Assembly (NCBI GenBank): GCA_965603825.1
Contig: CBFDEM010000061.1
Span: 186,001-250,000, forward strand
Length of the DNA stretch: 64,000 nucleotides
Source of the DNA: Blepharisma stoltei ATCC 30299
Taxonomy: Eukaryota > Protista > Ciliophora
Reading direction: 5' to 3'
The notes below the pieces were generated by a model. It was not told the origin of the DNA, searched no databases, and saw only the letters and a program-made list of their open reading frames with translations. Positions 1-63,185 of the stretch are shown here, piece after piece (position 1 is the first letter of the stretch; every line of letters starts with the position of its first letter). Both the position numbers and the translations under genes were made by a program.

Positions 1-3000
1 CAGTAAAATAATAACCTCTATTAATAGTTGCTATAGGATCAGCTGCATCATAATTAGGATAAAAACTATTATCTTTGCCTGTAAGTACTGGTATATTTGA
101 CTTTAAATCGGTAACGACATCTTTTATTTGATGCGGCATCAAATTGAATACAAAAAAATTGGTATAAGCAGGATAAGCATTACAATTGCTACCATTTATA
201 AAATATCCAGTAGGGCAAAATGACATACACAAAGATTGAATCAGATAATACCCTGATATACAAGTAAGGCAGCCATTAAATTTAAGTGTAGAGCAAGATG
301 CACAAATTGAATGGCAAAGCTCACAGCTTTGGAAGTTGGGAACTCACAATGCATTTGCAAGACACATACAATGACCAGCTGATTTATAAGCATTTGTAAT
401 ACAGCTTGTGCATTCTCCTGAAAAAGTAGTGCATGATTCGCATTCTTTATCTCTGCAAAGGTTGCATGATAAGTCATTAACACATCCTTGGATGCAGCTA
501 GAGCAAGCTATACAGCTATCAGGGTATTTATCGAAATCGCATTCACTTAAGCACAAATGATTTGATGGACAAGCAGAGCAACCAGTCACACATGAAGAAG
601 TCGCATAATCATCAGCTTGGTAGCTATACGAGTTATATATTATTAATCTTGCTAAAAAACCGTGAAGTCCTGAAGTTCCAAAAGTTTCATCATTTCCTAT
701 ATAAAGGTAGCCTAAAATGGTATCTTTAAAATAGGTCAAAGAAGTAGTTGTAATAGAGCTAGTAGATACTGCATTGATGTAGAAATTAATAATGGTTTTT
801 CCATTAGACTGGACTTGGCCTGTAAAGCTTAAGAAATTCCAACTGCTTAAAATACTTGTAGAAGCTGTTAAAGTTTTAGAAGTTGAATCGGAAAATTTTA
901 TTGAGAGGACTGGAAACCCAGATGAGTCTACAGTTATCTTAAAAATATCGCTCGAGATGTACTTTGTTACCAATATTCCACCTGAAAGTGGTTTAGTTCA
1001 TATAGAAACTGCAAATGATGGCGCTATCATTACAGTCGATGATAAATATTTGCTGAATTTAAAATAGTAGCCTCTTTTATAAGCTGGAATTGGATCATTA
1101 GCATCAAAATTTGGATAAGTATAAGCATTATTAATACCTACATTGAACCCAGAAACCGTATCAAGACGAATCTGGTCTGTTAAATCCAGGCTTATTCCTA
1201 TATTTGATACATAATCACATGCATTTGTGATTGAATTTTTAATATACCCCGATGGACACTCACTTAAGCATTGTCCAGTTGAGGCAAACAAGAAAAACCC
1301 TGATATGCATGCAGTGCATTTATTATAAATCGAAATAGTACATAGAGAGCACTCGCTTGGACATAACGCACATGAGAGTCCATCTATAGAAGCCCCATAG
1401 CCAGGATTGCAAAAGCATGAACCAGAAACCAAATGAGCGCTAGAAATGCATTGAGTGCATTTTCCTGCTCCAAACCCTATACAAACTAAGCATAATATAT
1501 CATAACAAATATTGCAGGAATTTCCTCTAACACATCCTTTAGTGCATGAGCTGCAAGATAGGCAAGAAGCACCATTTTGATATGCTGAGAATAAACAAGT
1601 TGATAAGCAAGAAGATTTTAATCCAGCCCCACAAAATGAGAAGCCATTAAGGATACTTAAAAAATCACTAATTCTTACATTCCACAGCTGAAAAGAATAT
1701 AAAAACCCAACAAATCCAGAGCTGTTGCTTTTTCCCAATTTCAAATTAGTAGATGATTGGTCTCGAAAAATCAAATTAGGGTTGCTTAATGAGTTCACTA
1801 AATTTCCATTGACATAAATTTCAAAAATAGTCGTACTTGATGCGTAAGCTACTACGACTGATACGTAATTTCAAGCTGCGAGCAAAATACTTTGTGCTAA
1901 TGAAATTCATGACTCTACTTGCATATTATTTTCCAGTTTTACTCTCATAGATCCATCTGATACTATTTGTAGCTTATTTTTCCTTATAACAGTGTCATCA
2001 GTTATATCTCAGACTCATGTACCCGTAGAAAAGCTGTGAGAAAGTGAAACAGGCAATGAAGACTCTAAATACATGTTCCCATCAAAATAAAGACCTCTTT
2101 TATATGCAGGTATAGGATCAACTGCCTCAGGGGATACAAAATGCTGATAAGTGCTTGAAGAAGTTCCAGAAGTAAAAAAGCCATAAGAACCTTGAAAATC
2201 ACTATCAAAGAATAAATCAATAACTTTAGTTGAAACTTCTGTGCATGAAGCTCCATATCCATAAGGGCAGTCATTTAAGCATATATCATTTACCATCTGG
2301 CTTCCCGTTGTACAGCTGCTACATTCAAAATAGCTGGTTTGTTTGCAGACAGAACAAAGCATATCACAAACTTCACAATTACCTGGCTTCCAAAACGTGT
2401 TTGCCTTACATTTACATCCTCCTGATCCATCATTTTCTGCATTTGTGATACAGCTTGAGCAAGACCCAGAAAATGAATCACATGTTTTACATTGTAGAGT
2501 CTTACAAAGGGTGCATGTACCGCTAGAACTGCTATATCTACACCCATTCGTGCACGATCCTGCACAACTTTCACAAGCTGATCCATTATAAAACTCCAAA
2601 AATGGGCAAGTTTTAGGACAGTTATAGTCACTAGGACACTGAGTGCATGGAGAAGTGCAGCTTGACGTTTTATAGTCGTTGATATAATAACTTGCTGAAT
2701 TAAAAATTTTTAAATTGTATAAAAAACCTTCAAAACTGCTTGTGCCTGCATTTCCGATGTAAAGAGTACCAGTGTTTTGGTCCTGAAAATAAGTTTGTGT
2801 TGAAGATGTACTTGACCCTGTAGATATTGAGTTAAAATATGAGCTTATGGTCACTGTGTTGCTGCTTGAGTTAATATTTCCTGTAAATGAAACAAAGCTC
2901 CAGCTACTTGTCAAGATATCTTGAGATGATAAAACAGAAAGTGACGAAGAATCACTGAGAGTAAGCGAAAGTTTGGGAAATCCGCCATTGAGTTCTAGAC

Positions 3001-5445
3001 AAAAGATTTGTAACCCTGAAACTATTTTCGTTACAATTGGACCTGAAGATATTGGAAATACTCATATAGATATAGCAAAATATGGACCTATCACAGTATT
3101 CGTTTGCATGTAGCTTGATGATTTAAAATAATACCCTTGTAGATACTGAGGGTATGGATCGCCTGCCTCATAGGTTGGATAAACATTACTGGTAGGCCCA
3201 ACTTGCACCCCTGAGACTGAATCAAGCTTTATTTGGTCGTAAAGGGATAAGCTTAGCCCAATTCTTGATGAAAAAGTGCAAGTTTTTGTTGAGGAATCCT
3301 CTATAAATCCTGTTGGGCAGTTTATTAGACATACCTTATTAATTAGTAAAAAATAGCCAGAATTGCATGAAGTGCATAAAGTATCTAAAGGACCTACACA
3401 AGAAGCACATTTAGTATTGCAAGGAGAGCAAAGAGCTTGGCTTGCAGGCTGATAAAACCCAGAATTGCATTGGCAAGGAGATCCAGAAGCATTAGAAATG
3501 CACAGCGTACAGCTGTTTGATAAAAAAGATGAGCACTGGGCGCATAAAAAATCATCACAAATGTAGCAAGATGTCCCTCTAGTGCATCCCATTGTACAAG
3601 AGCCTGAGGCTAAGCATGGTTGGCAATTGCTTCCATCATAATAATAAGAATACTCACATGGCCATAAGGTTGATACCACTCCACCTGTAAAGCCATAAAG
3701 ATTATAGGGTGTAGAAAAGTCTGTAATGGTTTCTCCTCATAGCTGAAAATAGCTTATAAAGCCATTGAATTTTGGAGAGCCTTTGCCTATATACAGCTGC
3801 CCACCAGCTGGAAGCCTAAATACGTAATTTGCAACTGTAACTGCTGTCCCAGCTATCATATTTAGATATGGAGTTATTGTCGTAGATTTATTAATAAATC
3901 CAACTGAACAAGAAATATAGCTTCATGTTTTTAAAGTTATAGGATTCGATACAGTGTAGCTTGCTGTTGTACCGTCTCAAGTTTCTAAGTCAAAATAAAT
4001 AGTTCCTGCAGCACTAAAAATAAGTGTATTTGTGCTATCACTAATTAGAACCCCAGAAATAGCATAAGCCCAAATTCCTATGCTTCAAGTATTAGATAAA
4101 TTTATAGACCCACTCAAAAACTTATTCGAATCAAAATAAAGGCCTCTATTTTTAGCTGGTAATGGATCAGTCGTTTCTGCGCTATTCCAATAATTATAGC
4201 TTGTAGAGCTACTACCAGTAATCAATTCTGAAGCATATACCCCAGCAAATGGAGTATTAAAATCAGCTGTTAAAACTGGAAAACAATAGTGCCCTCCACA
4301 TTCCCATGCTCCATACGGAGTCCCATATAAGCAAACTCCTGCATTAGGTAATCCAAAATTGCATAATGTGCTTGTCCAAGTTTGGGTGCATTCTATTGCT
4401 AGATGGTCACAGCATAATGGAGGGATTCCTGTAGTGCATGCAGAGCAAGATGCAAAAGAATACCCAGTGCAAGAGCTACAATCTGTCGAAAAGCAAATTG
4501 AACAGTCGCTTCTAATGCATCAAGGCCAATTTGGGCATGAATTATTACAGTCATTGCAATTAGTTCCGTCTCAGTACTGCTTATCAGCACAATCAACTGT
4601 TGGAGTCGACGTTGGGCTATTTACTTCATTATCAACCCTTGTTTGAAGCCAATAAATAAACCCTTTAAACGAATCAACTGTACTTGTAGATCCAAGATTT
4701 CAAATATAAGTCCCACTAGGAAAACTCATCTCAGAATCAGCCCATGATGTGCTATAATCTGTACCTCCATCAGCATCAATGCTGAATGAGGCTGTATTAC
4801 AATTATCCTGGCTAAAATAAATTGACACATAATGCCAAGATGATGAATATGAATTGGCACTTATCTCTGAAACAGAATTTTGTGATCCGTCTGAGCCATT
4901 AATTAAAGCATCAAATTGATATTTCCCAAGGACTGAAGATATTCTTATATAAGAAATTGAGCCAATTAGGACGTTTAAAATTTCTCCACCTTCAAGAGCT
5001 TTTATTCATAATTTAAAATAAAATAAAGACCTGGGATAAAACTTGTGTTGCTGGACATCCCAGATGTAGGGGCAAAATAAAACCCACGGTCTAAGGTAGG
5101 TAAAGGGGAATTTTGTGATTGATCATTAAATGGGATTCCTCCTGGGTTTAAAAATTCTGTGCCGCTGGGATCCTGTATTTTGTCAAACGTAAAATCTTGA
5201 AAACCAGAAAATTCTAAAGTGAATAAAATTGTATTTGAAGGATCAGGCCCAGCGCAATATTTATAGCAGCTAGGACAAGTATTTTCATCTGAAAAGCGAG
5301 TTGGACACTCCTCTGTGCATATAAGGTTGTCAGTCATGTATTTTGGCTTATTGCAGCTAAGTCTTCCACCAGCAGTTAAACTATCATTTGGGCAAGCTGA
5401 AAGAACTAAAACAGCATGAGCGATTAAAATAAAGATCCTTAGCAT
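1..5445 (-). pseudogene. Paralogue 1: giant LamG/furin-repeat surface receptor. The 3' end runs off the window and there is a 1-bp frameshift near 5009-5011 (pseudogene or assembly error).
   Basis: ATG at 5445 gives a signal-like start, MLRIFILIAHAVLVLSACP. The first frame ends at TAA 5002-5004 (LNYE*). All downstream fragments (3062, 2015, 998, 344) share one other frame and are separated by TGA. The gene is collinear with paralogue 2 at offset 9410, rising to 9413 after a 3-nt indel near 4510 and to 9414 after the 1-nt deletion. Modules A-B-C1-D-E and part of F are visible. Confidence 0.75.
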
Positions 5446-5650
5446 TTTTATTATAAACTCATTCAATAACTTAAAAAATAAACAAAAACGATTAAAATTT
5501 AAAAATAAGCTTTTTAAGCAATAAGACTACAAATAGTGATTATTTTTAGAAATTAGGAAAGTCTATAGGCTTTTAGAGATGACTGGCGAAGAAAATAGAT
5601 AAACTAATATCTCTTATGAAATGGTATTTTACCATGTTTTTAGGATATAA
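5446..5650 (-). promoter_or_regulatory. Putative promoter/5'UTR of paralogue 1, conserved with 14860-15063 upstream of paralogue 2
   Basis: A shared non-coding block lies directly upstream of both ATGs. The conservation may only reflect how recent the duplication is. Confidence 0.35.
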
Positions 5651-5850: not shown

Positions 5851-6990
5851 TTATAAAATAATTTTTTGATCAACTTGGCTGTGAGTTGGAAGTATTTTTG
5901 CTTTTTCAATATTTCCAGTGCTGAACTTAGCTCTAAAAAACTCATATACAGTCCTAACAAAAATAGTTATAGAAGCAAGTAACTGAACCCCTATTATTAT
6001 GACAATAATAATCACAATGCAATTTTCAATTTTAGACATCGCATTTGACTCGAGATTAAATAAATAAGCAACTGTGGAGCCCATTATTATACATATGAGT
6101 ATTTCAGAAACTAAGTTGCTTAATTGCGATATTTGGTCTTTAAAAGGACAATAAATTAATAGGTGCATGATAGTCATTAAGGAAAGCACAATATTAATAG
6201 TTACTTCTGTTTCTGGGTAATTTCTTAAATAGACTAAGTTTGCTATATAAATAAGCCTCCTTACAAAAAACACAAAATAATATTGGGTCGTTAGAAATTC
6301 TCGGTCAGTTCTAAACTCATAAAATAATGAGCCAAAAGAGGCAAAAAATGTTTTTTGATGTAATAAGATCCTTTTTTTATTTTTATAGGAAAATGCAAAA
6401 AATAATCCTGGAGTAATAATGAGTAATATGCCGACTGATGCACAGATAATAAAATTGATTATTTGTGTTGCGTTAGTAAACTTTAATTCGATAATTCCTA
6501 TACAAACTGCAGCTCCTAATTCAAGATAGCATTGAATCCAAAATCTCAAATAAAATGCAAATTGATATGACCTTAATGTTTTTCTAAGCTTATTACCAAC
6601 CCATCTATGAGAACATTTCGAAAAATAAAAAACTAATGGTAGAGCTACAATAGAAGTCAATATCAATGTAAAATCATTTCCTTGATTTATCAAAATTAGA
6701 TCTGTCTCAAATCCAAAATCCTGAGCTTGAGAATATGGAGTATTTCCTTCTTGTTCATCTATTAAATAAGAAAACATATTTGGAAATAAGTTAAAACTGT
6801 TCAGATTATTCAAAAACGCTCTTAGTTGGCTAGAAAAAGGAATTCCAGATAAAGTCAAGTAGCTAAGAATTTGCAATGTATTCATAATGCTTCATAAAGA
6901 GCTTGGATTTGGGCTTATAAATGATGACGCAAGAGCTGCAGCAACTGTAGTTTGCGCTACTGCTGTTGCTTGTGATGTAGTTGCTGCAAC
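5851..6990 (-). other. C-terminal membrane domain of about 8 TM helices (TRP/FLC/Pkd2-type, PF06011-like), present in paralogues 2-7
   Basis: Hydrophobic segments carry the motifs LWSxMNxLQILSY, YLRFWIQCYLE, FxxLFYEFR...YYFVFFxRRLIY and PF/YEDxxxQxxNLxxEI. These resemble the PF06011-type domain found behind large ectodomains in ciliates. The assignment is by eye. Confidence 0.6.
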
Positions 6991-9900
6991 ATCTGAGGAA
7001 TATGGATCAGGATTATAAGAATTCAAAATTACAGTAAAATCTGATGAATTTAAGATGCCATTAGACACTGATTTTACTTCTTTTAGATCTAAAAACGTCA
7101 ATTTAGCTAATGTGCCTTTAGAAATTTTCTCTTTTATGTTTAAAGATATATAATAAAAGGTGCTATTTACTTGCTCAATTTTACATGTAATTTCTCCTTG
7201 TTTTTCAATTAGTACTATAAAATCATAGACTCTAAGATCTTTTGCTAGGCTTTCTGAAAAGGTAAGCAAGAGGGAATTATCAAAGAAAACTGTAAGTTTT
7301 GCTGAAAAAGGAACCAATGTACAAGCTTTGATACCATTGTAGCCTAGATTGCAATAGCAGAGATCGGCTTTGAGGCTAGCGTTTTCTACACAAGCTGTAC
7401 ATTTTGTAGCAGATTCACAAAGAGTGCAGAGACTTGGACAGGGATAAAAGACTCCATCAGGACCTCTAAATCCGCCTTGTGCTATAGGAATGCAAGTGGT
7501 ATTATTTGGAGTTCCTAGCGCATGATTATCATCGCAGATGCATGAGTCAGGGTTTATAGCATTTTCTTTGCAAGTCACGCATTCTGCTGATGAATATCCA
7601 ATACAGTCTTCACATAATAAATTACTGCAGAGTGAGCAGGTGTCTCGTCAGTCCCTGCAAGACTTTTCGCATTTTATATTGCAATTATTGCACTTATTAT
7701 CAGCAGGCCCGCTCCAATATTCATTTATTTTGCAGTTTGGGATGCAGATTTGGTTTGTTGGACAAACATTGCAGTTTTCATTACACAATTTAGTCGACAG
7801 GCTTGATATTGGTTTTATTATGCTAAACATCTGAATACTATAAATAAAGCCTTGATAATAATTATAAAGTCCTTGTGAGCTAAGTTGGGCTCCTATAGTA
7901 ATTGTAGTATCAGAAACTGTATCAAAAAAAGCTCCATACCCTGAAGTTGCAGAGGAATCAGATAGGCCATTTATATAGCTTGACATTATATTATAGCCGC
8001 TATTTGGTTCTAGTGTAAATACAATATGACTTCATTCATAATTATTAAGCAAGGCTTGAGACTGGTATATGAAAGGAGATGAACTTATAATCAATGAAAT
8101 TGCTGGCTTACTGCCTATTAACAGGATTGAGTAAAGCACTGAAAAATTGTTAGTAATATCATGTTTCGATAACAGAGCAGAGGAAGAAATTTCTGTATTA
8201 ATTCATATAGAAATTGTGAAGGCAGTCCCAATTAGAAGATTTGGAGATGTATAGGTCGAATACTCAGGCAGCCTTAAAACTGAAGATTGCCCATTAAAAT
8301 AAAACCCTCTTAAATAAGCAGGGATAGGATCATCAGCTTCATAATCTGGATAAAATTGTTCAGATGACCCAGTTATGACTGGGATTGAGTTTGCTTTATC
8401 ATAAATGACTCCATTCAGAGTATTAAGGTCTAAGTCAAAAAATTTTTCTTTGGCTAGCATACATCCATTTGGAGAAGAATAATATCCTGCAGGACAGACA
8501 GCTTTGCAAACTCCTAAAGAACTAAAATATCCATCTGCACAAGATAAGCAGCCCAAAGAGCTAGAAGATATGCAGGTTTCGCAAGAAATATCACATAATT
8601 CGCAGACTTCATTAATAGTATTTCAATAATACCCAGAATTGCATTGGCAGCTGGTGCCTACTAAATTTGCGTTTGTTTTGCAAGTAATGCATGTATTTGT
8701 ATAGTCGTCACATACTTTGCAGATAACGTCTTTACATAAATTGCAGCTTTTATCACTTCTTACGCAGCCATTATTAGAGCAGCCAAACAAACAAGCTACA
8801 CAGATGCTGCCATCTAAGTATTTGTCTAAACCACAATTATCAATACAAGCATTGCTATTATCAATAGGGCAGAGGGAGCATGAATTGCAAGGACTTGAAA
8901 CTAAACTACTGACTGCTATTGGTGTATTATAGATTTTTAGATCCCATAAAAATCCATTAAAAGATGACACTAAAGATGTAGGGCTTGAATAGCATGCCCC
9001 AATTGCTATTAAAAACGAATTTTCTAAATCATTCAATCAGCTTGGTGCTAAATCGCTTGAAAGATCGCTTGCTCCATTTAGAGATAAAGTTACAATTTGC
9101 TGAGGGGTAGAACTTATGCCGGAAATTGCTGATATAAAATTTCATTGAGAAAGGGTAGCCTCTAATAAGGGATTAGAGCTTGTATAAGTAATTGTGGATG
9201 AGTCTTTTAGAGTCAATGTAAGAGATGGATATTTGTTTGTTAGTTCAAGGCTGATCGATTTTTTAAATAATCCGCTGTTAGCTTGCTTAGAAAAAATAAC
9301 CCCAGTGCCTACTATTGGTTTTATTCAAACTGCTATAGTAAATTTTGGTGCAAAAGTTAGTAGTGGTGTCGTAGTACCTGCATAAGGAGGCAGCTGCATA
9401 TAAGATGAGCCAGTAAAATAATAACCTCTATTAATAGTTGCTATAGGATCAGTTGCATCGTAATTAGGATAAAAGCTATTATCTTTGCCTGTAAGTACTG
9501 GTATATTTGACTTTAAATCGGTAACGACATCTTTTATTTGATGCGGCATCAAATTGAATACAAAAAAATTGGTATAAGCAGGATTAGCATTACAATTACT
9601 ACCATTTACAGTATATCCAGTAGGGCAAAATGACATACACAAAGATTGAACCAGATAGTACCCTGATATACAAGTAAGGCAGCCATTAAATTTTAGTGTA
9701 GAGCAAGATGCACAAATTGAATGGCACAGCTCGCAGCTTTGGAAGTTGGGAACTCATAATGCATTTGCAAGACACACACAATGACCAGCTGATTTATAAG
9801 CATTTGTAATACAGCTTGTGCATTCTCCTGAAAAAGTAGTGCATGATTCGCATTCTTTATCTCTACAGAGATTGCATGATAAGTCATTAACACATCCTTG

Positions 9901-12900
9901 GATGCAGCCAGTGCAAGTTATGCAGCTATCAGGGTATTTATCGAAATCGCATTCACTTAAGCACAAATGATTTGATGGACAAGTAGAGCAGCCAGAAACG
10001 CATGAAGAAGTAGCATAATCATCAGCTTGATTGCTATACGAATTATATATTATTAATCGTGCTAAAAAACCGTGAAGCCCTGAAGTTCCAAAAGTTTCAT
10101 CGTTTCCTATATAAAGGTATCCTAAAGTAGTATCTTTAAAGTAGGTCAAAGAAGCAGTTGTAATAGAGCTAGTAGATACTGCATTGATGTAGAGATTAAT
10201 AATGGTTTTTCCATCAGACTGGACTTGGCCTGTAAAGCTTAAGAAATGCCAACTGTTTAAAATACTTGTAGAAGCTGTTAAAGTTGTAGAAGTTGAATCA
10301 GAAAATATTACTGAGAGTACTGGAAACCCAGATGGGTCTACAGTTATCTTAAAAATATCGCTAGATATGTACTTTGTTACTAATATTCCATCTGAAAGTG
10401 GTTTAGTTCATATAGAAACTGTAAATGATGGCGCTATCATTACAGTCGATGATAAATATTTGCTGAATTTAAAATAGTAGCCTCTTTTATAAGCTGGAAT
10501 TGGATCATTAGCATCAAAATTTGGATAAGTATAAGCATTATTAATACCTACATTAAACCCAGAAACCGTATCAAGACGAATCTGGCCTGTTAAATCCAGG
10601 CTTATTCCTATATTTGATGCATAATCACATGCATTTGTGATTGAATTTTTAATATACCCCGATGGACACTCACTTAAGCATTGTCCAGTTGAGGCAAACA
10701 AGAAAAACCCTGAAATGCACGCAGTGCATTTATTATAAATCGAAATAGTACATAGAGAACACCCGCTTGGACATAACGCACACGAGAGTCCATCTATAGA
10801 AATCCCATAGCCAGGATTGCAAAAGCATGAGCCAGAAACCAAATGAGCACTAGAAATGCATTGAGTGCATTTTCCGGCTCCAAACCCTGTACAAACTAAG
10901 CATAATATATCATAACAAATATTGCAGGAATTTCCTCTAACGCATCCTTTAGTGCATGAGTTGCAAGATGGGCAAGAAGCACCATCTTGATATGAATAGA
11001 ATGAGCAAGCTGATAAGCAAGAAGATGTTAATCCAACCCCACAAAATGAAAAGCCATTAAGGATACTTGCAAAATTACTAATTCTTACATTTCACAGCTG
11101 AAAAGAATATAAAAACCCAACAAATCCAAAGCTGCCGACTCTTCCTAATTTCAAATTAGTTGATGATTGGTCTCGAAAAATCAAATTAGGATTACTTAAT
11201 GAGTTTTTTAAAACTCCATTGACATAAATTTCGAAAATAGTTGTACTTGATGCATAAGCTACTACGATTGATATAAAATTTCAACCTCCCAGCTGGTTAC
11301 TTTGTGTTAATGAAATTTCTGATTCTACTTGCATATTGTCTTCCAGTTTTACTATCATAGATCCAGGTGATGATATTTGTAGCCGATCTTTACTTATAAT
11401 AAAGTCATCACTTATATCCCAAACTCATGTCGCCATAGAAAAGGTGTGAGAAAGTGGAACAGGCAATGAAGACTGCAAATGCATGTTCCCATAAAAATAA
11501 AGACCTCTTTTATATGCAGGTATAGGATCAACTGCTTCAGGGGTTACAAAAGGCTGATAAGTGCTTGAAGAAGTCCCAGAAGTAAAAATGCCATAAGAGC
11601 CTTGAAAATCAGTATCAAATAATAAATCAATAACTGGAGTTGAGACTACTGTGCAAGAAGCTCCATATCCATAAGGGCAGTCATTTAAGCATATATCATT
11701 TACCATCTGGCTTCCCGTTGCACAGCTGCTACATTCAAAATAGCTGGTTTGTTTGCAGACAGAACAAAGAATATCACACACTTCACAATTACCTGGCTTC
11801 CAAAACGTGTTTGCCTTACATTTGCATCCTCCTGATCCATCATTCTCTGCATTTGTGATGCAGCTTGAGCAAGACCCAGAAAATGAATCACATGTTTTAC
11901 ATTGTAGAGTCTTACAAAGGGTGCATGTTCCGCTAGAACTGCTATATCTACATCCATTCGTGCACGATCCTGCACAACTTTCACAAACTGATCCATTATA
12001 AAACTCAAAAAATGGGCAAGTTTTAGGACAGTTATAGTCACTAGGACACTGAGTGCATGGAGAAGTGCAGCTTGAGGTTTTATAGTCGTTGATATAATAA
12101 CTTGCTGAATTAAAAATTTTTAAATTGTATAAAAAACCTTCAAAACTGCTTGTGCCTGCATTTCCGATGTAAAGAGTACCAGTGTTTTGGTCCTGAAAAT
12201 AAGTTTGTGTTGAAGATGTACTTGACCCTGTAGATATTGAGTTAAAATATGAATTTATGGTCACTGAGTTGCTGCTTGAGTCAATATTTCCTGCAAATGA
12301 AACAAAACTCCAGCTGCTTGTCAGGGTATTCTGAGATGATAAAACAGAAAGTGACGAAGAATCACTGAGAGAAAGTATAAGCTTGGGAAATCCGCCATTG
12401 AGTTCTAGACAAAAAATTTGTACCCCAGAAATTATTTTAGTTACAATTGGGCCTGAAGATACTGGAAATACTCATATAGATATAGCAAAATATGGAGATA
12501 TCACAGTATTTGTTAGCATATAGCTTGATGATTTAAAATAATACCCTTGGAGATACTGAGGGTATGGATCGCCTGTTTCATAAGTTGGATAAACATTATT
12601 GGTAGACCCAACTTGCACCCCTGATACTGAATCAAGCTTTATTTGGTCATAAAGGGATAAACTTAGCCCAATTCTTGATGAAAAAGTGCAAGTTTTTGTT
12701 GAGGAATCCTCTATAAATCCTGTTGGACAGTTTATTAGACATACCTTATTAATATATAAAAAATAGCCAGAATTGCATGAAGTGCATAAAGTATCTAAAG
12801 GACCTACACAAGAAGCACATTTTGTATGGCAAGGAGAACAAAGAGCTTGATTTGTAGGCTGATAAAACCCAGAATTGCATTGGCAAGGAGATCCAGAAGC

Positions 12901-14859: not shown

Positions 14860-15063
14860 TTTTATTATAATCTCATTCCATAACTTAAAAATAAATAAAA
14901 ACGATAATTTTTAAGAATGAACTTTTTCAGCAATAAAACTGCAAATAGTGATTATTTTTAGAAATTAGGAAAGTCTATAGACTTTTAGAGAGGACTGGAG
15001 AAGAAAATAGATAAACTAATAACTCTTGACGAAATATGGTATTTTAACATATTTTTAGGATAA
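9411..15063. repeat. Recent duplication unit: 9411-15063 is highly similar to 1-5650, including about 200 bp of 5' non-coding DNA
   Basis: Sequences are near-identical line by line at offset 9410-9414. Similarity continues past the ATGs (caaatagtgattattttt(t)agaaattaggaaagtctatag...gaagaaaatagataaactaata) and ends near 'tttttaggata' (about 5648 and 15062). Confidence 0.9.
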
Positions 15064-43500: not shown

Positions 43501-43610
43501 TCAATAAAATATTTTGAGTTTGCACATCCTATAGTGACACTATTGTATGGGCAAGTTGCTGCAACGAAAGTCAACACAATTTTGGAGAAATAAAATAAAG
43601 CCAAAATCAT
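34599..43610 (-). CDS. Paralogue 5: about 3003-aa receptor with modules A,B,C2,D,E,F,G and the TM domain
   Basis: All fragments from 43107 to 34599 are in one frame. ATG at 43610 (MILALFYFSKIVLTFVAA), TAA at 34599-34601, length 9012 nt. The gap stretches I translated (42354 to about 41650, and near 41280) contain only TGA interruptions. Confidence 0.9.
34915..35660. repeat. Near-identical TM-domain block shared by paralogues 5 and 6 (copy at about 44425-45170)
   Basis: Offset is 9508. ORF 35355..35642 and the matching part of 44800..45150 differ at 1 of 95 aa, while the flanking stalk regions diverge. Confidence 0.85.
36755..37110. repeat. Near-identical module-G block shared by paralogues 5 and 7 (copy at about 56303-56660)
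   Basis: Offset is 19548. Both have the peptide FYMADRLLNNYEWSHVVFTLELTQN, which differs in the other copies. A second shared block lies at about 40270-40550 vs 59815-60095. Confidence 0.8.
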
Positions 43611-50100: not shown

Positions 50101-53100
50101 TCCATCAGCTTCTGCATTAGTGATGCAGCTTGAGCAAGACCCAGAAAAAGAGGTGCACTCATAGCACTGCTCTGTTTTACATAATCTACAAGTGTTGCTA
50201 TGTCTGCATCCCTTTGTACAAGTTCCCATACAATCTACACAGGCTGAACCATCGTAATATTGTGATAAAGGGCAGGTATCTGGACAATTATAATCACTAG
50301 GGCAACTCAAGCATGGAGAGGTACAACTTGATGTCGAATAGTCACTAAGTTTCAAAGTTTCTGAATTATAAATATTTATATCATATAAAAAACCTGTGAA
50401 ACCACTGTTTAAACTTGATTTTGTTCCAATATAAAGAGTTCCTAAACTGAGATCCTGAAAATAAACTTGGCTTACTGATGAGCCTGTATCTATTGGTATC
50501 GAATTAAAATATGAGCTTATTGTTGTTACATAGCCTGTATCGATTATTCCTGTAAATGCAATAAAGTTTCAGCCATTCAATACACTTGATGATAAAGCTA
50601 CAGATAGTGCTGAGGAGTCGCTTAAAGTAATTGAAAGTTGAGGGTACTCAGAACTTAAAATTTCAAAGCAAAATATTTCGCCCCCAGAAACAGTTTTAGA
50701 GACTATTGTGCCTGCAGAAGTTGGATAAATTCAAACAGAAATAGAAAAATATGGTCCAATCACTGTGTTGGTTGTGAGATAAGTAGTGCCAGTAAAATAG
50801 TATCCTCTTAAATAGGCTGGGTATGGATCGTTAGTATCATAATTCGGATAAGTGTTTGTATTAGAAGATCCAACTGAAATTCCTGAAATTGAATCAAGCA
50901 CTATTTTGTCATAAAAAATTATACTTAATCCAATATTTGAAGAAAAAACACAAGTTTTTGTATATGAGTTTTCGGTGTAACCTGTAGGACAGCTTGAAAG
51001 GCAAAAATTGCTATTATAAAAATAAGAGCTAGAGGTGCAGGAAGTGCATAAATAGTAAGATGAGCCAGTACAATGAGCGCATCCCGCATAACAAGCTGAG
51101 CATAAAGCTTGATTTGCATCAGGCTGGTAAAATCCAGAATTACATGAGCATGGAGACCCAGAAGCATTAGAAATACACGAAGTGCAAGCTCCTGACCAAA
51201 ATGAGGAGCATTGAGCGCATAAAAAATCGTCACAAATATAGCAAGAGGTTCCTCTAGTACAGCCAATTGTGCAAGAGCCTAAGCATGGCTGACATACAGA
51301 TCCATCATAATAGTGAGAATAGTCACACGGCCATAAAGTTGATAATGAACCTCCTGTCAGTGTATTTATGCTATAAGAAGAAGAAAAATCGCTAATTTCA
51401 ACTTGTCAAAGTATAAAATAAGCAATAAACCCGCTAAAATTTGTTGAACCTTTGCCAATATATAATACTCCTCCTGATGGCAATCTGAAAACATAATCTG
51501 TAACAGTTACTGCTGTTCCAGCTATATTATTAAGGTAAGGAATTACTGTAGTCACTTTATTGGAAAACCCGATTGAATAAGAAATGTAGCTTCATACATT
51601 TGAAGTTATAGATTGTGAAGCTGAGTAGCTTGTAGACGTTCCATCCCACTTTTCTAAGTAAAAATTAATTCCGGTAGAACCAATATTAAGTTTATTTGAG
51701 CTATGACCTATAATTGTCCCAGAGTTAACTAGCACCCATAGGCTCATACTTCAAGTGTTAGAAAGATTTATAGACCCACTTAAATATTGGTTGGAATTGA
51801 AATAAAAACCTCTGCATTTTGCAGGGAATGGATCAGATGATTCTGGAGAATTCCAATAATTATAGCTTGAAGAACCTGTGGCAGTAGTCAAAGCTGTTCC
51901 ATAGCTTCCTGCAAATGAGCCTGTAAAATCAGCAGTCAAAACGGCTGTAGAAACAGCTGTACAACTTCCGAATCCATATGGGCATGCATATAGGCAAATT
52001 CCTCCAATTAAAACTTTTCCACTAATACATGCAGTATTTGTCCAGGTTTGGGTGCAAGTTGCACCAAAATAATCACAGCATCCTGGAACTATTCCTGTAG
52101 TGCATGCTGTACACATTGATAAAGAGTATCCATAACAAGAACTGCAATCAGGAGAATAACAAATATCACAACTTGAGCCTCTAACGCACCAAGGCCAAGT
52201 GGGACATCCCGAGCCACAGTTTTGGCAAGCAGACCCATCTCAATATTGATTATCAACACAATCAATAGTACTACTCATTGTCCCATAATTTCGATTTGTA
52301 TCAGATCTTGCCTGAAGTCAATAAATGAACCCTCTAAAAGAGTTTCCTCCGCTCAAATTCCCAAAAGTCCACGTATACGTTGCTGTACCTGAAAATTTTG
52401 CTTCAGTGCTGCTTGAGGTTGTTGTTCCAACATTAGACCCATTTATATAAAAATTTATGGTTGCTTCAGAGCATGAAGATTGATTTAGAATTATTGATGC
52501 TTGATGTCATGACGAGATATAGCTTGAAGTGCTAGCTCCAGATATAGAAATTGAGCCACTGCTTGTATTATAGACAATTGCACTAAACATATAAACACCA
52601 GAGGAATCTGTCCATATCCTTATATATGAGCTCGAGCTCAAAAGGACGTTTAAAATTTCTCCACTGTCTAAAGGCTTAATCCATAAATTTAATGTGAAAT
52701 ACAAAGCAGGAACATGACTTTGATTACTAGTGATACTTGAAGTCGTAGCGAAATAAAAGCCACGATCGACTGTTGGGAGAGGAGAATTTTGAGTTGCTGA
52801 ATTATATGAAATTGATCCTGGATTTTCGAAGTGCTCAGAAGCAGATGTGGAACTTGCAATATATGTGGCAGTCAAATCTTGAATGTTTAAAAATTCTAGT
52901 GTGAATAAAATTGCATTGTTACTATTGGGCATGCTGCATGAATAGCCAAATCCATAATTTGCATTTGAGCCAAATAGTGAAGGGCATGAATTCACACATA
53001 CTTTACTATCAGCTAGGTAGTATGAGTTTGAGCATTTGCATGTAAAATATAAATCGCTACTGTTAGATGGGCAGCAACAGTAGGTCAACAATATTTTGGT

Positions 53101-53127
53101 GAAAGAAACTAAAGCAAATATCATCAT
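44116..53127 (-). CDS. Paralogue 6: about 3003-aa receptor with modules A,B,C1,D,E,F,G and the TM domain
   Basis: All fragments from 52507 to 44116 are in one frame. ATG at 53127 (MMIFALVSFTKILLTYCC), TAA at 44116-44118, length 9012 nt. Confidence 0.9.
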
Positions 53128-54155: not shown

Positions 54156-57100
54156 TTATTTTTCGATTTTTTTATGGCTATCATTCAAAGGTTGAATACT
54201 ATTTCTCATAATCCCTGCTTTGGTCAGCTTATGATGGATAACACCATACAGAGTTCTTGCAAAAATCGCGATTGAAGAAAAAGATTGAATGATCATAACT
54301 CCTATCACAATAGCTACAATGGCGTTTTCAAATGTCGAGGTAATTTCTTGCTCTAAATTAAATAAATAAATTGATGTCGAGCTCATAACTAAGCAAATCA
54401 TAATTTCAGTCAATAAATTGTTTATTTGCAAAACTGGGTCCTCAAAAGGCCAGAAAAAGATCAGATGCAAAATAGTCATTAAGGAAAGAACAATATTTAT
54501 GGTGACTTCAGTTTGCGGATATTCCCTCAAAAATACCAAATTTATTATATAGATGAATCTCCTTATAAAGAACACGAAGTAATACTGTGTTGCAAGGAGG
54601 CCTCTATCAACTCTGAACTCATAAAAGAAGGAACTAAATAACTCTGTGAAGCTCTTTTCTCTTGACTGGATCCGATTTTTATTTTTATAAGAGAACCAGA
54701 AATATCCTGGTGGAGTTATAACTAGTAGTATATAAATTGCTAAGCATATAATAAAATTGATAATTTGTGTGAAATTGTTAAACCCAAAAGTAATTAGGCC
54801 AATACTAGCTGCAGCTCCTAGTTCAAGGTAGCACTGGATTCAAAATCTCAGATAAAATCCAAACTGATAAACTTTTACTGTTTTCATAAACTTTTTACCA
54901 ATTCACCTAAATGAGCATCGTGAAAAAAAGAAAACTACAGGCAGAGCAGTTAATGATGCAACTATTATTGTAAAATCATTGCCTTGCGTTATTAAAATCA
55001 AATCAGTATCAAACCCAAAATCTTGTGCTTGAGAATATGGAGCATTTCCTTCATTTTTATCAATTATATATATAAAAATATTTGGAAATAAATTGAAGGA
55101 ATTCAAATTATTCAAAAACGAGCTCATTTTGGATGACAGTGGAATTCCTGATAAAGTCAAGTAACTCAGAATTTGTAAGCTGTTTATCATACTTCATAAA
55201 GAACTAGGGCTTGGATTTACAATTGATAAGGCAACAGCTCCAGAAATAGCAACTTGAACCCCAGCTGCTGCTTTAGAAGTAATTGCCTCAACTGCCGGAG
55301 AGTATGGAGCTGGATCATAAGAATTAAGTGATATAGAAATATCTGAAGAATTTAAAACGCCGTTTGATATTGATTTTATGTCTGTTAAGTTTGAGAATTC
55401 TAAAGTAGTTAATGTGCCTTTAGATATTTCTTTAGATATAACTAGAGAAATATAATAGCAAGTGCTATTCATCTCCTCAATTTTAAATGAAGCTTCTCCT
55501 TGTTTTTGAATTTTGATAGTAAAGTCATTTGCAGAGAGACTGTTAGCAAGGATATCTGAAAAAATAAGGTAAAGTGAATTATCTGAAAAAGCAGTCAACT
55601 TCGCTGAAAAGGGAACTAATATGCAGTTTTCAGCCCCATTGTAACCTAAATCACAATAGCATAGATCATTTTTAAGGCTGGCATTTTCTACACAAGAATT
55701 GCACTTTGTAGAGGATTCACAATAAGTGCAGAAGCTTGGACATGGATACAATTTCCCATCAGGACCTCTAAATCCGCCTGCTTCCACAGGAATACAAGAA
55801 TTGCTATTAGAAGTGTCAAGCACATAGTTTATATCACAAATACAAGAACTAGGATTGATAGCGTTTTCTATACATTTAGAGCAGCCAGTAGATGAATAAT
55901 CATTGCAAGAATCGCATAATAAATTATCGCAAAGAGAACAAGTAGACCTTCAGTCTCTGCAGGTTTCTTTGCATTTTACGTTGCACTGATAGCATTTATT
56001 ATAGGCTGGTCCAGCTCAATATTCATTTATTTTGCAATTCGGAATGCATTTTTGGTCTGTTGGGCACACACTGCAGCTTTCAGTACAAGAGGTCGTGGAA
56101 AGGCTTGACATAGACTTTAGTGAATTAAATATCTGTATACTATAAAGAAAGCCTTGATAAAAATTATAAGTTGATGATGAACTAAGCTGAGCGCCTATAG
56201 ACATTATTGTGTGAGGACCTTTATCCTGGAAAATCCCATATATTGAGTTTCCGAGCGCGTCAGATAATCCATTTATATAACAAGACAGTTTACTGTAACT
56301 GTTTTGAGTCAATTCTAATGTAAATACTACATGACTCCATTCGTAATTATTGAGAAGTCTATCAGCCATATAAAAAATTTGGAATGAGCTTAAGGTAAAT
56401 GAAATCGAAATTTTGCTGCCCATCAATGAGATGGAGTAAAGCGTTGAATAACTATCAGAAATGTTATGCTTTGATAATAGAGTGCCATATGAAGTCTCAG
56501 TATTTAATCATATAGAAATCGTAAAGGTAGAGGGAATTATAAGTCTTGGTGATGCATAATTTGAATATTCTGGCATCCTTAAAATAGAAGATTTGCCGTT
56601 AAAATAAAATCCTCTTAAGTAAGCAGGTATAGGGTCATCAGGTTCATAATTTGGATAAAATTGGTTAGTTGATCCAGTTATAACAGGAATTGAGTTTACC
56701 TTATCATAAATTACTCCATTCAGAGTATTCAGATCCAAGTCAAAAATTTTTTCTTGAACTAATACACAACTACTTCCAGAAGGTGAATATCCTAACGGGC
56801 AGCTATTTACACAAATTCCTGATACATTATAAAATCCATTAGAGCACGTCAGACAGTCTAACGAAGTTGATGATGCACAAGTTTTACAAGAAACATCACA
56901 AGAGCCACAGTTTTCATTGGTGCTATCCCAAAAGTATCCAGAATTGCATTGGCAACTTGCTCCGCTTAAGCTTGCATGCGTTTTGCAGGTAATGCATACA
57001 CTTGTATAGTCATCACATACTTCACATAGCATATCTTGGCAGAGATTACAACTTTTATCAACTCTTGCACAGCCTTTAGCTAAGCATCCAGATGAGCATG

Positions 57101-60100
57101 TGACACAGCTGTTGCCATTTCAGTATTTATCTATATCACAACTATCCAAGCAAGTATTGGAATTATCTATTGGACATAGAGAGCACCCACTACAAGTGCT
57201 TGATGCTAAACTACTAACTGCTATTAGCGCATTATAAATTTTGAGATCTCAGAGAAATCCACTGAAAAATGACGTTAAGATTGAAGAGCTAATATAGCCT
57301 GCTCCAATAGTCATCAAAAACGAAGCACCTAAATCACTTAGCCAGCTTGGGTCTAGATCGCTGGATGTATCGATCATTCCATTTCTAGATAAACTAATAA
57401 TTTGTTGTGGATTAGTACTTATGCCTGAGCTTGCTGATATGAAATTTCATTGAGAAAGGGCAGCTTCTAATGATGGATTAGTACTTGTAAAAGTTTTTGT
57501 ATTAGAATTTTTTAAAGTTAAAGTAAGTGAAGGGGCTTTGTTTATCAATTCCAAACTAATATGTTTTTTAAAAAGACCACTATCGGCTTGCTTGGAAAAG
57601 ATTACTCCTGTATTTGAAATTGGCTTTATTCATGCTGACATAACAAATTTTGGCGAAAATGTGAGCAATGATGAAGTGGTGCCTGCATAAGGAGGCAGCC
57701 TCATATAAGATGAACCAGAGAAATAATAACCTCTATAAATGGCTGCTATAGGATCAGTTGAATCATAATCAGGATAAAATTTGTTATCTTTGCCTGTTAA
57801 TACCTGAATATTTGACTTCAAATCAGTGATGATGTCTTTTATTTGATGAGGCATCAAGTTAAATACAAAAGAATTTGAATAATTCGGGTCTCTATCGCAG
57901 TTACCACCATTTATAATATACCCAGTAGGACAAAATGGCATGCAGAATGATTGTATTAGATAGTGGCTGGAAATGCATGTGAGGCAGCCATTATAGTTTG
58001 GAGTTGAGCATGCAGAGCACATTGCATCGCAAAGTTCACAGCTCTCAGTATCTGAATCTCATACAGCATTTGCAACACATACACAATGATTACTTACTTT
58101 ATGAGCGTTTGCAATACAACTTGTACATTCTCCTGTAAAAGTCGTGCATGATTGGCATTCTTTATCTCTGCAAAGTCTGCACGTTAAGTCACTAACGCAT
58201 CCTTCGCTGCAGCCAGTCTTGCAAGTATTGCAGCTGTCTGGATACTCATTTACTGCACAGTCGCTTAAACACTGGTGGTTTGAAGGGCAAGTAGAACAGC
58301 CAGATGTGCAAGAAGATGTTGCGTAGTCGTCAGATTTATAACTATGAGAGTTATATATCATTAATCTTCCTAAAAATCCATATAGTCCTGAAGTCCCAAA
58401 AGTTTCATCATTTCCAACATACAGCATTCCTGCATTAGTATCTTTAAAATAAGTGAAAGCTGTTGAAATGATAGAACTTGGAGATGCTCCATTATCAATA
58501 TAAAGTTTTAAAATTGATTTTCCATCATCTTGGATATTGCACGTAAAACTTAAAAAATGCCAGCTTAATGTAATACTTGTGGAGGTAGTTAGAGTTTGGG
58601 TTGATGAGTCAGCAAACACAATTGAAAGCGCTGGAAATCCTGACGAGTTGATCTCAATTTTGAGAATCTCAGTAGTAGTAATATATTTAGTCATCAAAGT
58701 TCCATGATTTAGAGGTTTAGTTCATAGAGAAATAGTGAATGATGGAGCTATCATGACTGTAGAGGATAAATAATCACTCATGTAAAAATAATACCCTCTT
58801 TTATAAGAAGGTATAGGATCATTCAAATCAGTTGATGTTAACCCACTATAAGTATTTGTATTAGAATTCCCTACATTAAAGCCAGAAACGGTATCCAGCC
58901 TAACCTGGTCTGTTAAATCAAGACTAATCCCAAATTTTGACACAAAATCGCAAGTTTTTCCCCCTGTATTTTGTGTATATCCAGATGGGCACTCATCTAA
59001 GCACTGTCCAGTATTAGCAAAGAAATATCCAGAACTGCATGCTGTACATTTATTATAGGTCACAGCCAAGCATAAAGAACACCCACTGAAGCAAGAAGCA
59101 CATGATAAACCATCAGTGGATCTTCCAAACCCAGCATTGCATAGGCAAAGCCCTGACGATAAAGTTACACTGGGATCACATTGAGTGCATTTACTTGAAT
59201 CAAATCCTGTGCAAGTTATGCATAATGAATCGTCACAAATATTACAAGTACTAGCTCGCCTGCATCCATAGGTACAGGAATTGCAAGCAGAGATAGCTCC
59301 ATTTATATATGAAGAAATATCGCAGGCTCATAAACAAGATGCTCCCTGCCCTGATTCACAAAATGTAAAACTGCTGATAATTGCTGGAAATCCTGTAATT
59401 GCAGTATTTCATAGCTGAAAATAATAAATAAAGCCCACAAATCCAGGATTGTTGCTTTTGCCGAGTATTAGAGAGGTCAGTGCCTGGTCTCTGTAAATCA
59501 TTTTTGTTAAACTGCTTGCTGAACTTGAAACTCCATTTATATAAATTGATAGGGCTGTGTTCCCTAGTGAATATTCAAAAGTGACTGATAGATAAGCCCA
59601 CCCAGTAAATGACGAGCTAAGTGTTAATGCCTGAGAAGATGTTGCCTGAGCTGGATCTGTCATTGTAACAGCTATAGAGCCTGTAGAAGTCAGCGTTAAA
59701 AAAGTTTGTTTTTGCAATAAATCACCATTTGTAATTACATATAACCATACTCCGATTGAAAAACTATGAGAAAGATAAACAGTTGTTGAGGATAATAAAT
59801 ACATATTTCCATCAAAATATAAGCCTCGCTTATATGCAGGAATTGGGTCAACACTTTCAGGGCTGTTGGAAAACTGAAAAGTCGCTGCACTTGTCCCTGT
59901 TGTAAAAATTCCATAAGACCCTTGAAAATCTTCATCAAAAGACTGATCAATCACTGTAGTCGTTACTACTGAGCAAGAAGTACTGTAAGGACACTCATCT
60001 AGACACACAGTTCCTGCTAGTTGATAGCCTCCTAGACAAGCTGAGCATTCAAAATATGCTGTTTTTAAGCAAGTCGAGCAAAGAGCATCACAAAGCTCAC

Positions 60101-63100
60101 ATGTTTCACTTGAAGACACTCAGAAAGCATTAGAAGCACAAGTGCAGCCTCCATTCCCATCGCTAACAGCATTTGTAATGCAAGTTAGGCATGAATTAGC
60201 ACCTGTAAACTCAGTGCATGTAGCGCATTCTTTAGTCTTGCAAAGGTTACAAGAATCAGCGTTTCTGCATCCTTTATTGCATGCACTTATGCAACTCGCA
60301 CAAGGAGAGCCATCATAATATTGAGATAATGGGCAATTATCTGGGCAAGTTAAATCTATAGGACATTTTGTGCAGCTGCCTGAGCATCCAACAGTTTGTC
60401 AGTCATCCAATGCATGATTACTCTGGCAGTAAATCTTTAGTTCCCACAAAAACCCAATAAACCCACCACTGTAAAGCCCGATATAAAAGTTTCCTGTCTT
60501 GCTGTCTAACAAATAAAGTGGACTTAAAGATGTAGAAGTAGCTTGAGAAGCAGAATCAATATAAGAACTTATTGTTGTTGTCCCGCCAGAATTAACTTTA
60601 CAGTCAAATGATACAAAAACTCAGCTATTAAGCACATTTGAGGGTCCTATTACTGAAACGGTGCTTGAAGCATCCATTAAGAGAAGTGACAGTTTTGGAT
60701 ACCCTGATGATAAAATTTGAACAAATCACTGGGTTGTTGATACATATTTTGTTATAACCATACCACTTGCTGTAGCCTTTATTCATAGAGATATTGAAAA
60801 ATTTGGAGCAAGCATAAACATTGTAGTTAGATAACTATTGGAATTAAAATAGTAGCCTCTGAGATATGCTGGAACTGGATCATTCGAATCATAAGTAGGA
60901 TAAGCATTAGAAAATGAAGATCCTACTTGCTTTCCTGACAGTTGATCAAGTAGTATTTGATTGCTAAAAGATAAGCTAAGTGCCGTTACTGATGACAAAT
61001 CACAGTTACCTGTGCCTGTATTTTTTGTATATCCTATAGGGCAATCTGGAAGACACATTTTACTGTTATAAAAAAAGGAACTAGAGCTACAGGAGGTGCA
61101 TAAATAATAATATGAGCCTGTGCAATGAGCACATCCTGAATAGCAAGCTGAGCATAAAGCTTGGTTTGCGTCAGGTTGGTAAAATCCAGAATTGCAAGAG
61201 CATGGGGATCCAGAAGCATTAGGAATGCATAAAGTGCAAGCCCCCGACCAAAATGATGAGCATTCAGCACATAAAAAATCATCACAAATATAGCAAGATG
61301 TTCCTCGAGTACAACCATTTGTGCAGGATGAATCTAAGCATGTTTTGCAGACTGATCCATCATAATAATACAAATAATCACATGACCAAAAAGCTGATAC
61401 TGAGCCTCCTGTCAATGTATTGATACTATAATAAGCAGAAAAATCACTGACTGTCACCTGCCAAAGGATAAAGTAAGCTATAAATCCATTGAAATTTGGT
61501 GAGCCTTTGCCGACGTATAGCGTTCCACCGGAAGGTAGTCGGAATATATAATCTGTTACAGTTGTTGGAGTTCCAGCAATCTTGTTAAGACACGGAGTCA
61601 TAGTTGAGGCTTTATTTGCAAACCCAAATGAATAGGAAATATATGTCCATGTATAAGAAGTTAAAGCCTGCGAAACTGAGTAGCTTGTAAGGGAAGATGA
61701 ACCATCCCATTTTTCTAAGTAAAAAGTTGCAGCTCCACTAGAATCAATAATAAGCTTATTTGTACTATGACTAATTATTGTCCCAGATATTGCATAAACC
61801 CAGATCGCCATACTCCAAGTGTTAGACAAATTTATGGATCCGCTCAAAAATTGATTAGAGTCAAAATAAAGCCCTCTATTTTTAGCTGGCTTTGGATCAG
61901 AAGACTCTGGAGAATTCCAATAGTTATAACTCGAAGAACTTGTAGCCGTAATCAAAGCTGTTCCATAACTTCCTGCAAAGGCCCCTGTAAAATCAGCAGT
62001 TAAAACAGCTGTACTAACAGCTGCACAATTTCCAAAACCATACGGGCATGCATATAAGCAAGCATCCCCAACCAAAAAATTTCCAGTACTACACCCTGTA
62101 TTTGTCCAAGTTTGTGAGCAAGCTGTCCCTAAATAGTCACAGCAATTAGGAACTACACCTGTATTACAATTAATGCATGTTAATGGAGGATATCCCTTGC
62201 AAGTAATACAATCAAGGACATTGCAAGTGATACAGTCGGTTCCTCTAATACACCAAGGCCAAGTTTGACAACTTGGGCTGCAGTTTTGGCAAGAAGAGCC
62301 ATCTCAATATTCGTTATCAACACAATTAATAGTAGCAGTCAAAGCAGCAGTGCTCTGAACACAATCTGCTCTTGCTTGAAGCCAATAAATAAACCCTCTG
62401 AAAGAATTTCCACTACCTGTATTTCCAATATTCCATGTATAGGTTAGCTTTGGAACCCTTACTTCAGTATTGCTGAAGTCTGTACTCCCGACATTGCTTC
62501 CATTAATGTAAAAAGAAATATTAACTGTATCGCAGTCGAGCTGATTAATAATCATGGAAGCAGTATGCCATGAAGATGTAAAGCTAGAAGTGGAAACTGC
62601 AGTTCTTGAGGCTTGACTGTTATTTGAATCGTAAACATATATTGTGAATTTATACACACCTGAGGCATCAGCCCATATCCTTATATACGAATCTGGACTA
62701 AAAATAACATTTAAAATTTCCCCATTAGCAAGAGGCTTAATTCATAAATTTAAAGTAAAATAGCACCCAGGAATAAAACCTTTACTATTCGCGATACTTG
62801 AAGTAGTAGCAAAGTAAAAGCCACGGTCAATAGTTGGAAGTGGGGAATTTTGTGTGGGAGAACTATATGAAATGGAGCCTGGGTTTTGGAAAATAGTAGT
62901 TGAATCAGTTGAACTCACTATCTGAGCAGCAGTTAAATCCTTGATGCTTGAAAACTGTAAATCGAAAATAATCGCGCTTGTTCCACTTGGCGGGTAACAT
63001 CAGGCAACAATACCACTTCTCTTAGCATAAGTGAATTGCGAAGGACATACATCAATACCTGTGCATACTTTGCCATCCTGTATCTTTGAATGAAGACAGT

Positions 63101-63185
63101 AAGGAAGCCCAATTATATTTCCACCATCATAAGGACAAGCGAGAGTCAACAAAAATTTGGCGATAAAAATAAGAACAGTTTTCAT
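54156..63185 (-). CDS. Paralogue 7: about 3009-aa receptor with modules A,B,C2,D,E,F,G and the TM domain
   Basis: All fragments from 63000 to 54156 are in one frame. ATG at 63185 (MKTVLIFIAKFLLTLACP), TAA at 54156-54158, length 9030 nt. The 430-aa fragment 60783-62075 has TGG where other copies have TGA (NLSNTW, LEKWDG, YTWTYI). Confidence 0.9.

Follow-up and report, generated by a model that had tools for sequence, protein, structure and literature searches.

Tandem giant genes for LamG-repeat proteins on a predicted FLC/Pkd2-like membrane base in the ciliate Blepharisma stoltei

What kind of protein is encoded by the row of giant, similar genes found in a 64,000-nucleotide stretch of the Blepharisma stoltei ATCC 30299 genome (GenBank assembly GCA_965603825.1, contig CBFDEM010000061.1, positions 186,001 to 250,000 of the forward strand; henceforth the window), and what might such proteins do? 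An earlier note, made by inspection of the letters, had described a repertoire of lectin-like, multi-pass receptors. The architecture, folds and family history of these proteins have now been established computationally. Each complete product is a string of beta-sandwich modules of the LamG type, separated by Cys-rich spacers and carried by an immunoglobulin (Ig)-like domain and a bundle of nine membrane helices akin to that of the fungal FLC/Pkd2 proteins. The preferred interpretation, held tentatively and rated a little short of an even chance, is that these are adhesins that sense contact and are linked to a path for cations.

The window has a guanine plus cytosine (GC) content of 34%, and its open reading frames (ORFs) were read with TGA as a sense codon. 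This gives seven minus-strand ORFs of 1708-3019 codons, which are termed G1 to G7; with the standard code (table 1) the longest ORF in the window is at most 506 codons, and table 6, also tried, leaves the window without long ORFs. In an alignment of the seven genes, TGA lies opposite Trp at 108 of 203 aligned residues and opposite Cys at just two, which rules out the latter assignment; TAA and TAG serve as stop codons. The published B. stoltei macronuclear assembly, 41 Mb in 64 sequences, has UGA encoding Trp and introns of 15-16 nt (PMC9942806). Six of the genes (G2-G7) are complete and, with TGA read as Trp, encode proteins of 2581-3009 aa. Database proteins P0178, P0167, P0169 and P0170 are identical to the translations of G4, G5, G6 and G7, respectively, as is P0175 to that of G3 when started at the second ATG. 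Searches used TGA-free pieces or database proteins as queries, and the rest of the contig (C61) is known through coordinates, 4-kb loci and database proteins.

Every gene opens with a signal-like hydrophobic N-terminus, recognised by eye and from hydropathy, in keeping with the signal peptide originally proposed. This is followed by repeats of a unit approximately 340 aa long, comprised of a beta module of about 230 aa and a Cys-rich spacer. A nearly invariant DPxPxxxRGxYF cap belongs to the beta module, and this anchor together with the beta-domain signature occurs six or seven times per gene, bearing out the first impression of tandem giant genes with LamG-type repeats. The proposed count of six to seven modules holds for the six complete genes, with seven in G2, G5, G6 and G7, six in G4, and six plus a gutted one in G3; the exceptions are this gutted module and G1, which is incomplete in the window. 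Modules group by their position in the protein (types A-G) rather than by gene. The Laminin_G_3 family (PF13385) is matched by six stretches each of G7 and G4, with scores of 158.7 and 159.7 bits, respectively, against a cut-off of 27.6. Likewise, the AlphaFold model of module G of G7 with its spacer, which has a mean predicted local distance difference test (pLDDT) score of 93.5, is a concanavalin A (ConA)-like jelly-roll sandwich, as had been anticipated. Its best structural match is domain 4 of AbnA (5hon; Z 19.2, root-mean-square deviation 3.0 over 192 residues), with CBM40 (Z 16.6), pentraxin (Z 15) and neurexin (Z 13) following, and CBM40 is also the best profile match in the PDB. These proteins, including the LNS domains of neurexin, share the beta-sandwich of the modules (Z 13-19) at 12-19% identity. 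In fold, therefore, the LamG modules are modelled as closest to carbohydrate-binding modules, and sugar binding is putative. Matches to clostridial neurotoxin chains cover a generic lectin-like subdomain only, and nothing else in the window proteins is toxin-like. The spacers had been likened to furin-type repeats; arrays of CxxC motifs (42-53 per complete protein, each with 6-6.4% Cys) and invariant Cys residues are indeed present, but the match to Furin-like_2 is weak, with E-values of 4e-4 to 0.04 that fall below the Pfam cut-off.

The C-terminal part of the proteins differs from first expectations. Where a stalk had been supposed, the AlphaFold model of the last 495 aa of G7 (pLDDT 91) has a folded Ig-like domain, here called the hat, and after it a bundle of helices. 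Free of Cys, the hat matches S-layer/Big_5-like and CopC-type Ig domains. Instead of about eight transmembrane helices, the model, the hydropathy of the family and the pattern of Lys and Arg residues in the loops indicate nine, the first two weakly hydrophobic, with the N-terminus outside and the C-terminus inside; the predicted cytosolic tail is approximately 20-30 aa long and lacks an enzyme domain. Within the helices, W2664, N2668, R2780, R2876 and E2927 are 94-100% conserved, and such conservation of buried charged and polar residues is more than a plain anchor would need.

Among the searches made with this base, Foldseek matched the hat alone, structure searches of the PDB gave no clear solved relative of the bundle, and PDB sequence searches with the membrane domain returned blanks or chance matches. 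The bundle retrieved rhodopsins and class A and C G protein-coupled receptors (GPCRs) at Z 6.5-8.6, the background level for helical bundles, and TRP channels were absent from the top 50 of both structure searches. By contrast, the match to a predicted fungal protein with ML and TRP (PF06011) domains had a TM-score of 0.68 over 397 residues, prediction being compared with prediction, and a plant Big_12 family gave 0.73, again model against model. PF06011 was matched by 15 of 79 homologues, with a best E-value of 4.6e-8, and relatives P0030 and P0075 exceed its Pfam cut-off; P0030 is 26% identical to G7 (E 7e-64). The best value among the contig paralogues is 0.0029. None of the 79 family members matched TRP_N/ML (PF14558), and no 7tm or 7tm_2 match was found in the proteins tested. 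Two Blepharisma proteins were all that a word-based search found with the alignment of the base as query. The base is neither a canonical TRP/polycystin-2 channel nor a GPCR; the TRP/FLC-like base suggested earlier is supported in the FLC/Pkd2 (PF06011) sense.

In its base the family compares with fungal FLC and Schizosaccharomyces pombe Pkd2, the predicted layout of which is an Ig domain and nine helices (10.1101/2022.08.11.503631). The likeness consists of an Ig-fold domain placed directly on a nine-helix bundle, besides the TM-score and the remote Pfam matches of relatives. The window proteins differ in that their hat is the S-layer/Big_5-like type rather than an ML domain, in adding a LamG/Cys ectodomain of 2000-2500 aa, in having a very short tail and in forming a large multigene family. 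In overall design, the nearest counterpart elsewhere is DGF-1 of Trypanosoma cruzi, with the bodonins of Bodo saltans similar to it; these too are giant and multicopy, with a signal peptide, position-specific tandem modules, an Ig hat and seven to nine helices. However, DGF-1 has seven ribs, each a beta-helix and always in the same order, whereas the Blepharisma modules are beta-sandwiches that vary in number. Polycystin-1 and the adhesion GPCRs, also invoked in the earlier note, offer an analogy in how they work, since in them too a multi-pass base carries a long ectodomain built of adhesive modules. The likeness extends to REJ and GPS domains in heterotrich relatives, where these accompany LamG arrays of the same kind. 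In the window proteins, REJ and GPS are absent by Pfam from G4 and G7 and by motif from G3-G7, no PLAT match was found in the window proteins, 7tm_2 is likewise lacking, and their base comes from another family.

The genome-wide distribution supports the proposal of a large, diversified repertoire. A profile of the base found at least 87 matches in the genome, some of them split pieces; the copies number roughly 80 genome-wide. Between 12 and 293 kb, contig C61 alone holds about 33 copies, of which 30 are full-length matches, two are broken and one is a fragment (the broken copies, C61:85096-86536 and 136276-137732, are split between frames; the fragment lies at 167480-167755). In a FastTree phylogeny, sampled C61 copies form one clade (support 99) nested in a larger one (98) made up of Blepharisma sequences only. 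Module strings in the family include CDG, ACDG, ABEFG, AACDCDG and ABCDCDEFG, and strings on other contigs reach 13 modules, so that the family ranges from about three to 13. Homologues occur in Stentor coeruleus and in metagenomic heterotrich-like contigs, as single copies in the three loci examined; the homologues considered are the best 150 of 1608 matches, and the range outside heterotrichs consequently rests on atlas clusters. The same base is found with malectin and LamG (malectin E 6e-30), with TIG, PA14 and LamG, or with LamG, REJ and GPS. REJ and GPS are present in P0029/P0164, P0195 and P0205. The metagenomic protein P0164 (L034:265-6135), for instance, has two LamG modules, REJ and a GPS motif ahead of the Ig hat and nine-helix base, and is possibly a self-cleaving member of the family. 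Conversely, P0195 and P0205 carry LamG strings of the same kind on a different, REJ-GPS base. P0205, from another B. stoltei contig, places a C61-type ABCDCD string on a polycystin-1-like version of it, which to judge from its sequence means that two receptor bases have swapped ectodomains.

The way in which this diversity arose can be read from the paralogues. In all pairs and all domains, the ratio of nonsynonymous to synonymous substitution rates (dN/dS) stays under 1 (0.11-0.72, mostly 0.15-0.45), with pooled values of 0.23-0.45 for LamG and 0.12-0.27 for the membrane domain. Mean identity among the contig paralogues is 0.49, 0.46, 0.56 and 0.58 for the distal modules A, C, D and B, respectively, the C and D means taking in within-gene duplicates, and rises to 0.64-0.68 in the proximal modules and 0.66 in the bundle. 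The suggested pairing of a variable ectodomain with a conserved core is therefore correct as a gradient, though not as the outcome of positive selection on domains. Exchange is evident in G5, a mosaic that is G7-like in modules C-D and G and G6-like in the membrane domain: across codons 700-1400, 504 informative sites are G7-like and 156 G6-like, as against 18 and 92 in codons 2690-2860, and its longest run was matched in 3 of 2000 shuffles. Taken together, the low dN/dS, the identity gradient and the G5 mosaic indicate that diversity arises mainly through gain, loss and exchange of modules, rather than detectable positive selection. With regard to expression, a single study provided four runs, taken by guess to be RNA, with short contigs at a depth of 2-12 that fall on coding parts of G1 and G2 but not on the intervening spacer. 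Substitutions are present in many of these contigs, and the pattern suggests that G1, G2 or close paralogues are expressed at a low level.

Much of this has a precedent in the genome paper, the supplementary information of which places an orthogroup, OG0000019, with the large transmembrane families that occur in clusters, and gives it Laminin_G_3 domains in series, seven helices in a C-terminal domain and malectin in some members (PMC9942806). By that description, rather than by cross-checked gene identifiers, OG0000019 is almost certainly this family; UniRef names members as TNFR-Cys or Laminin G domain-containing proteins. The genome paper counts seven helices by TMHMM and gives neither the fold of the base nor module shuffling nor a function. 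The earlier statement that no functional description was known thus holds for function, but the architecture and its clustering were already listed by Singh et al. 2023 (PMC9942806); the additions made here are the Pkd2-like base, the interchangeable ectodomains and the parallel with bodonins and DGF-1.

According to the preferred reading, the proteins would enter the secretory pathway and most likely reach the cell surface, where LamG modules may attach to glycans or glycoproteins of prey, substrate or other cells, many weak sites together providing avidity. The hat would relay load or binding to the bundle, which would open a path for cations (Ca2+), and differing module strings would confer differing reach and specificity. 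Support for sugar binding comes from the malectin and PA14 domains of relatives on the same base, and the gating step is modelled on reconstituted Pkd2, which passes Ca2+ in vesicles upon stretch and is located at the plasma membrane (PMC9727806). The presence of REJ and a GPS motif on this base in P0164 counts in favour as well. Several points weigh against this proposal. Where the proteins reside, what they bind and how they are gated are matters of inference; other roles of LamG folds are protein binding or structural; few studies have reported channel activity for PF06011 proteins, and no solved structure of that type was found in the PDB searches. In addition, G2, G4 and G7 gave no match to PF06011, dN/dS in all pairs revealed no positive selection at the domain level, and the expression evidence is sparse, of low depth and from one study. 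The family provides named candidates for recognition of prey, substrate and mates by heterotrichs, and for a contact-to-Ca2+ channel, in a species that is kept in culture and for which an RNA time series is publicly available.

The strongest alternative, although an unlikely one, is that these proteins form an adhesive coat that does not signal, the bundle being a conserved anchor or trafficking unit. DGF-1 is of the same design, its signal peptide being followed by seven modules specific to their position, an Ig hat and seven to nine helices (10.64898/2026.07.27.741050), and features in a language-model atlas, which provide a lead only, give similarities of 0.86 and 0.90 between the base and clusters of DGF-1_C; no match of a hidden Markov model for DGF-1_C (PF11040) was found among the homologues, in a search with an uninformative control. 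The bodonins, moreover, are numerous and weakly expressed, with a speculated role in attachment to prey and substrate (PMC4728078), and the short cytosolic tail would suit a coat. However, anchoring would be expected to need only a single helix or glycosylphosphatidylinositol, and the invariant buried Arg, Glu and Asn residues and kinship with Pkd2 favour an active membrane domain. Were the base an anchor only, the family would simply add to the large surface-protein families of protists, and the genome paper had listed it before.

Distinctly less probable is an intracellular role in secretory or feeding pathways, whether in handling glycans of food vacuoles, extrusomes or the cyst wall, or in FLC-like transport into the lumen of the endoplasmic reticulum (ER). 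Malectin is an ER lectin in animals, and malectin domains occur in some paralogues. Furthermore, fungal Flc1 is described as regulating calcium homeostasis and flavin transport (PMC9600462). Set against these parallels, Pkd2 sits at the plasma membrane (PMC9727806), and variation in module number and an 80-copy repertoire suit outward recognition better than housekeeping. Improbable, too, is a receptor without a channel, in which the bundle would act as a GPCR-type switch through a cytosolic partner. The rhodopsins and GPCRs among its PDB matches, and the TIR_2 domain in some members of an atlas neighbour, are in its favour, but those matches fall within the helical-bundle background of the tool, and both 7tm Pfam matches and, in the window proteins, GPS are lacking. 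The idea that the repertoire includes the receptor for gamone 1, a glycoprotein mating pheromone, has been weakened to the point of being very improbable. Such a receptor is termed putative and gamone 1 binds ConA, yet the pheromone retains some activity when deglycosylated, and its specificity is ascribed to sequence (PMC10892320); nor does one ligand require 30-80 receptors. Least probable of all is a largely neutral, decaying array of duplicates: the frameshift in G1, the other broken copies and fragment on the contig and the eroding pseudogenes that the genome paper mentions in such clusters (PMC9942806) are in line with it, but six intact ORFs of 7.7-9.0 kb and the dN/dS values across domains largely refute it.

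Beyond the window, one membrane module, for which no solved structure was found, may be common to fungal FLC/Pkd2 and a number of orphan surface families of protists. A broader proposal, which is speculative and rather unlikely, is that the Ig hat and nine-helix unit constitute a single pan-eukaryotic signalling base, common to fungal FLC/Pkd2, bodonins and DGF-1, plant Big_12 proteins and the ciliate family, onto which interchangeable ectodomains are set, whether LamG arrays, malectin, PA14/TIG or REJ-GPS, giving in Blepharisma a recombining set of ligand- or tether-gated Ca2+ channels. If true, this would be a channel-based counterpart of the adhesion GPCRs, and a candidate touch or prey sensor in heterotrichs.

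Table 1. Positions of the genes, modelled domains and sequence anomalies in the window
Feature	Position	Strand	Description
G1	1..5445	-	5' part of seven-module paralogue (A-E and start of F), 91% identical to G2
G2	5851..14859	-	3002 aa; ABCDEFG, Ig hat and membrane bundle
G3	15687..24089	-	2800 aa; modules A B C(gutted) D C' D G
G4	25978..33723	-	2581 aa; modules A C D C' D G
G5	34599..43610	-	3003 aa; ABCDEFG; mosaic
G6	44116..53127	-	3003 aa; ABCDEFG
G7	54156..63185	-	3009 aa; ABCDEFG; source of structure predictions
G7 module G	56007..56771	-	LamG/ConA beta-sandwich with conserved N-terminal cap (AlphaFold)
G7 Ig-like hat	55317..55613	-	aa ~2525-2623; Z 10.6 to SbsC Ig domain
G7 nine-helix membrane bundle	54219..55298	-	PF06011-like; aa ~2630-2989
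G1 frameshift	5005..5012	-	one base, near 5009-5010, T-run in module A
G1 module D divergent patch vs G2	1889..2068	-	68-72% identity in 40-codon windows
G3 deletion junction	21730..21745	-	411 bp, in-frame; core of third LamG module lost

G1 and G3 carry sequence anomalies (Table 1). The signal-like start of G1, at 5445, lies upstream of its frameshift, and one public contig, from a run guessed to be RNA, carries one extra base at the break, which may reflect an assembly slip, a strain allele or a paralogue. The remainder of the gene, encoding the last modules and the membrane domain, is outside the window at C61:182489-186187, where (L002:1519-2529) a TAA occurs shortly ahead of the usual C-terminus of the family. 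The divergent patch in its module D has proportions of nonsynonymous and synonymous differences from G2 (pN and pS) of 0.17-0.18 and 0.10-0.16, respectively, and is too small for selection to be called. In the case of G3, paralogue G4 has TTAT at both ends of the segment that is missing. Deletion through microhomology is the simple reading, and somatic excision of the LamG core is also conceivable; direct repeats bounded by TA are a mark of the internal eliminated sequences of ciliates too.

Outside the C61 clade, most other paralogues, as well as two metagenomic homologues, have two 15-nt introns in the base, which are absent from that clade. In-frame examples were seen at G000:C6, C12, C29, C40, C48 and C63, and in L031 and L033, and on their account automatic gene calls such as P0055, P0119 and P0129 are truncated. 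Read-through of in-frame TAG codons in paralogues elsewhere was rejected as an alternative, since most matches are about five codons longer per TAG and 15-nt GT..AG introns occur at those sites in metagenomic loci. More distant PF06011-like clusters were observed at G000:C43:489630-542024 and on C39, C35 and C30, one of them above the Pfam cut-off.

The intergenic spacers of the window contain no detectable coding remnants, and neither tRNA genes nor relevant tandem repeats were found in the window. The regions upstream of G1 and G2 (5447-5647 and 14861-15062) are 89% identical over 204 nt, indicating that the 5' region was part of the duplication; no mutual similarity was detectable among the other spacers. 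The longest spacer, at 24090-25977, is 1.9 kb in length with 23% GC and no coding remnant, and includes a short 9/25-bp tandem repeat at 25836-25890.

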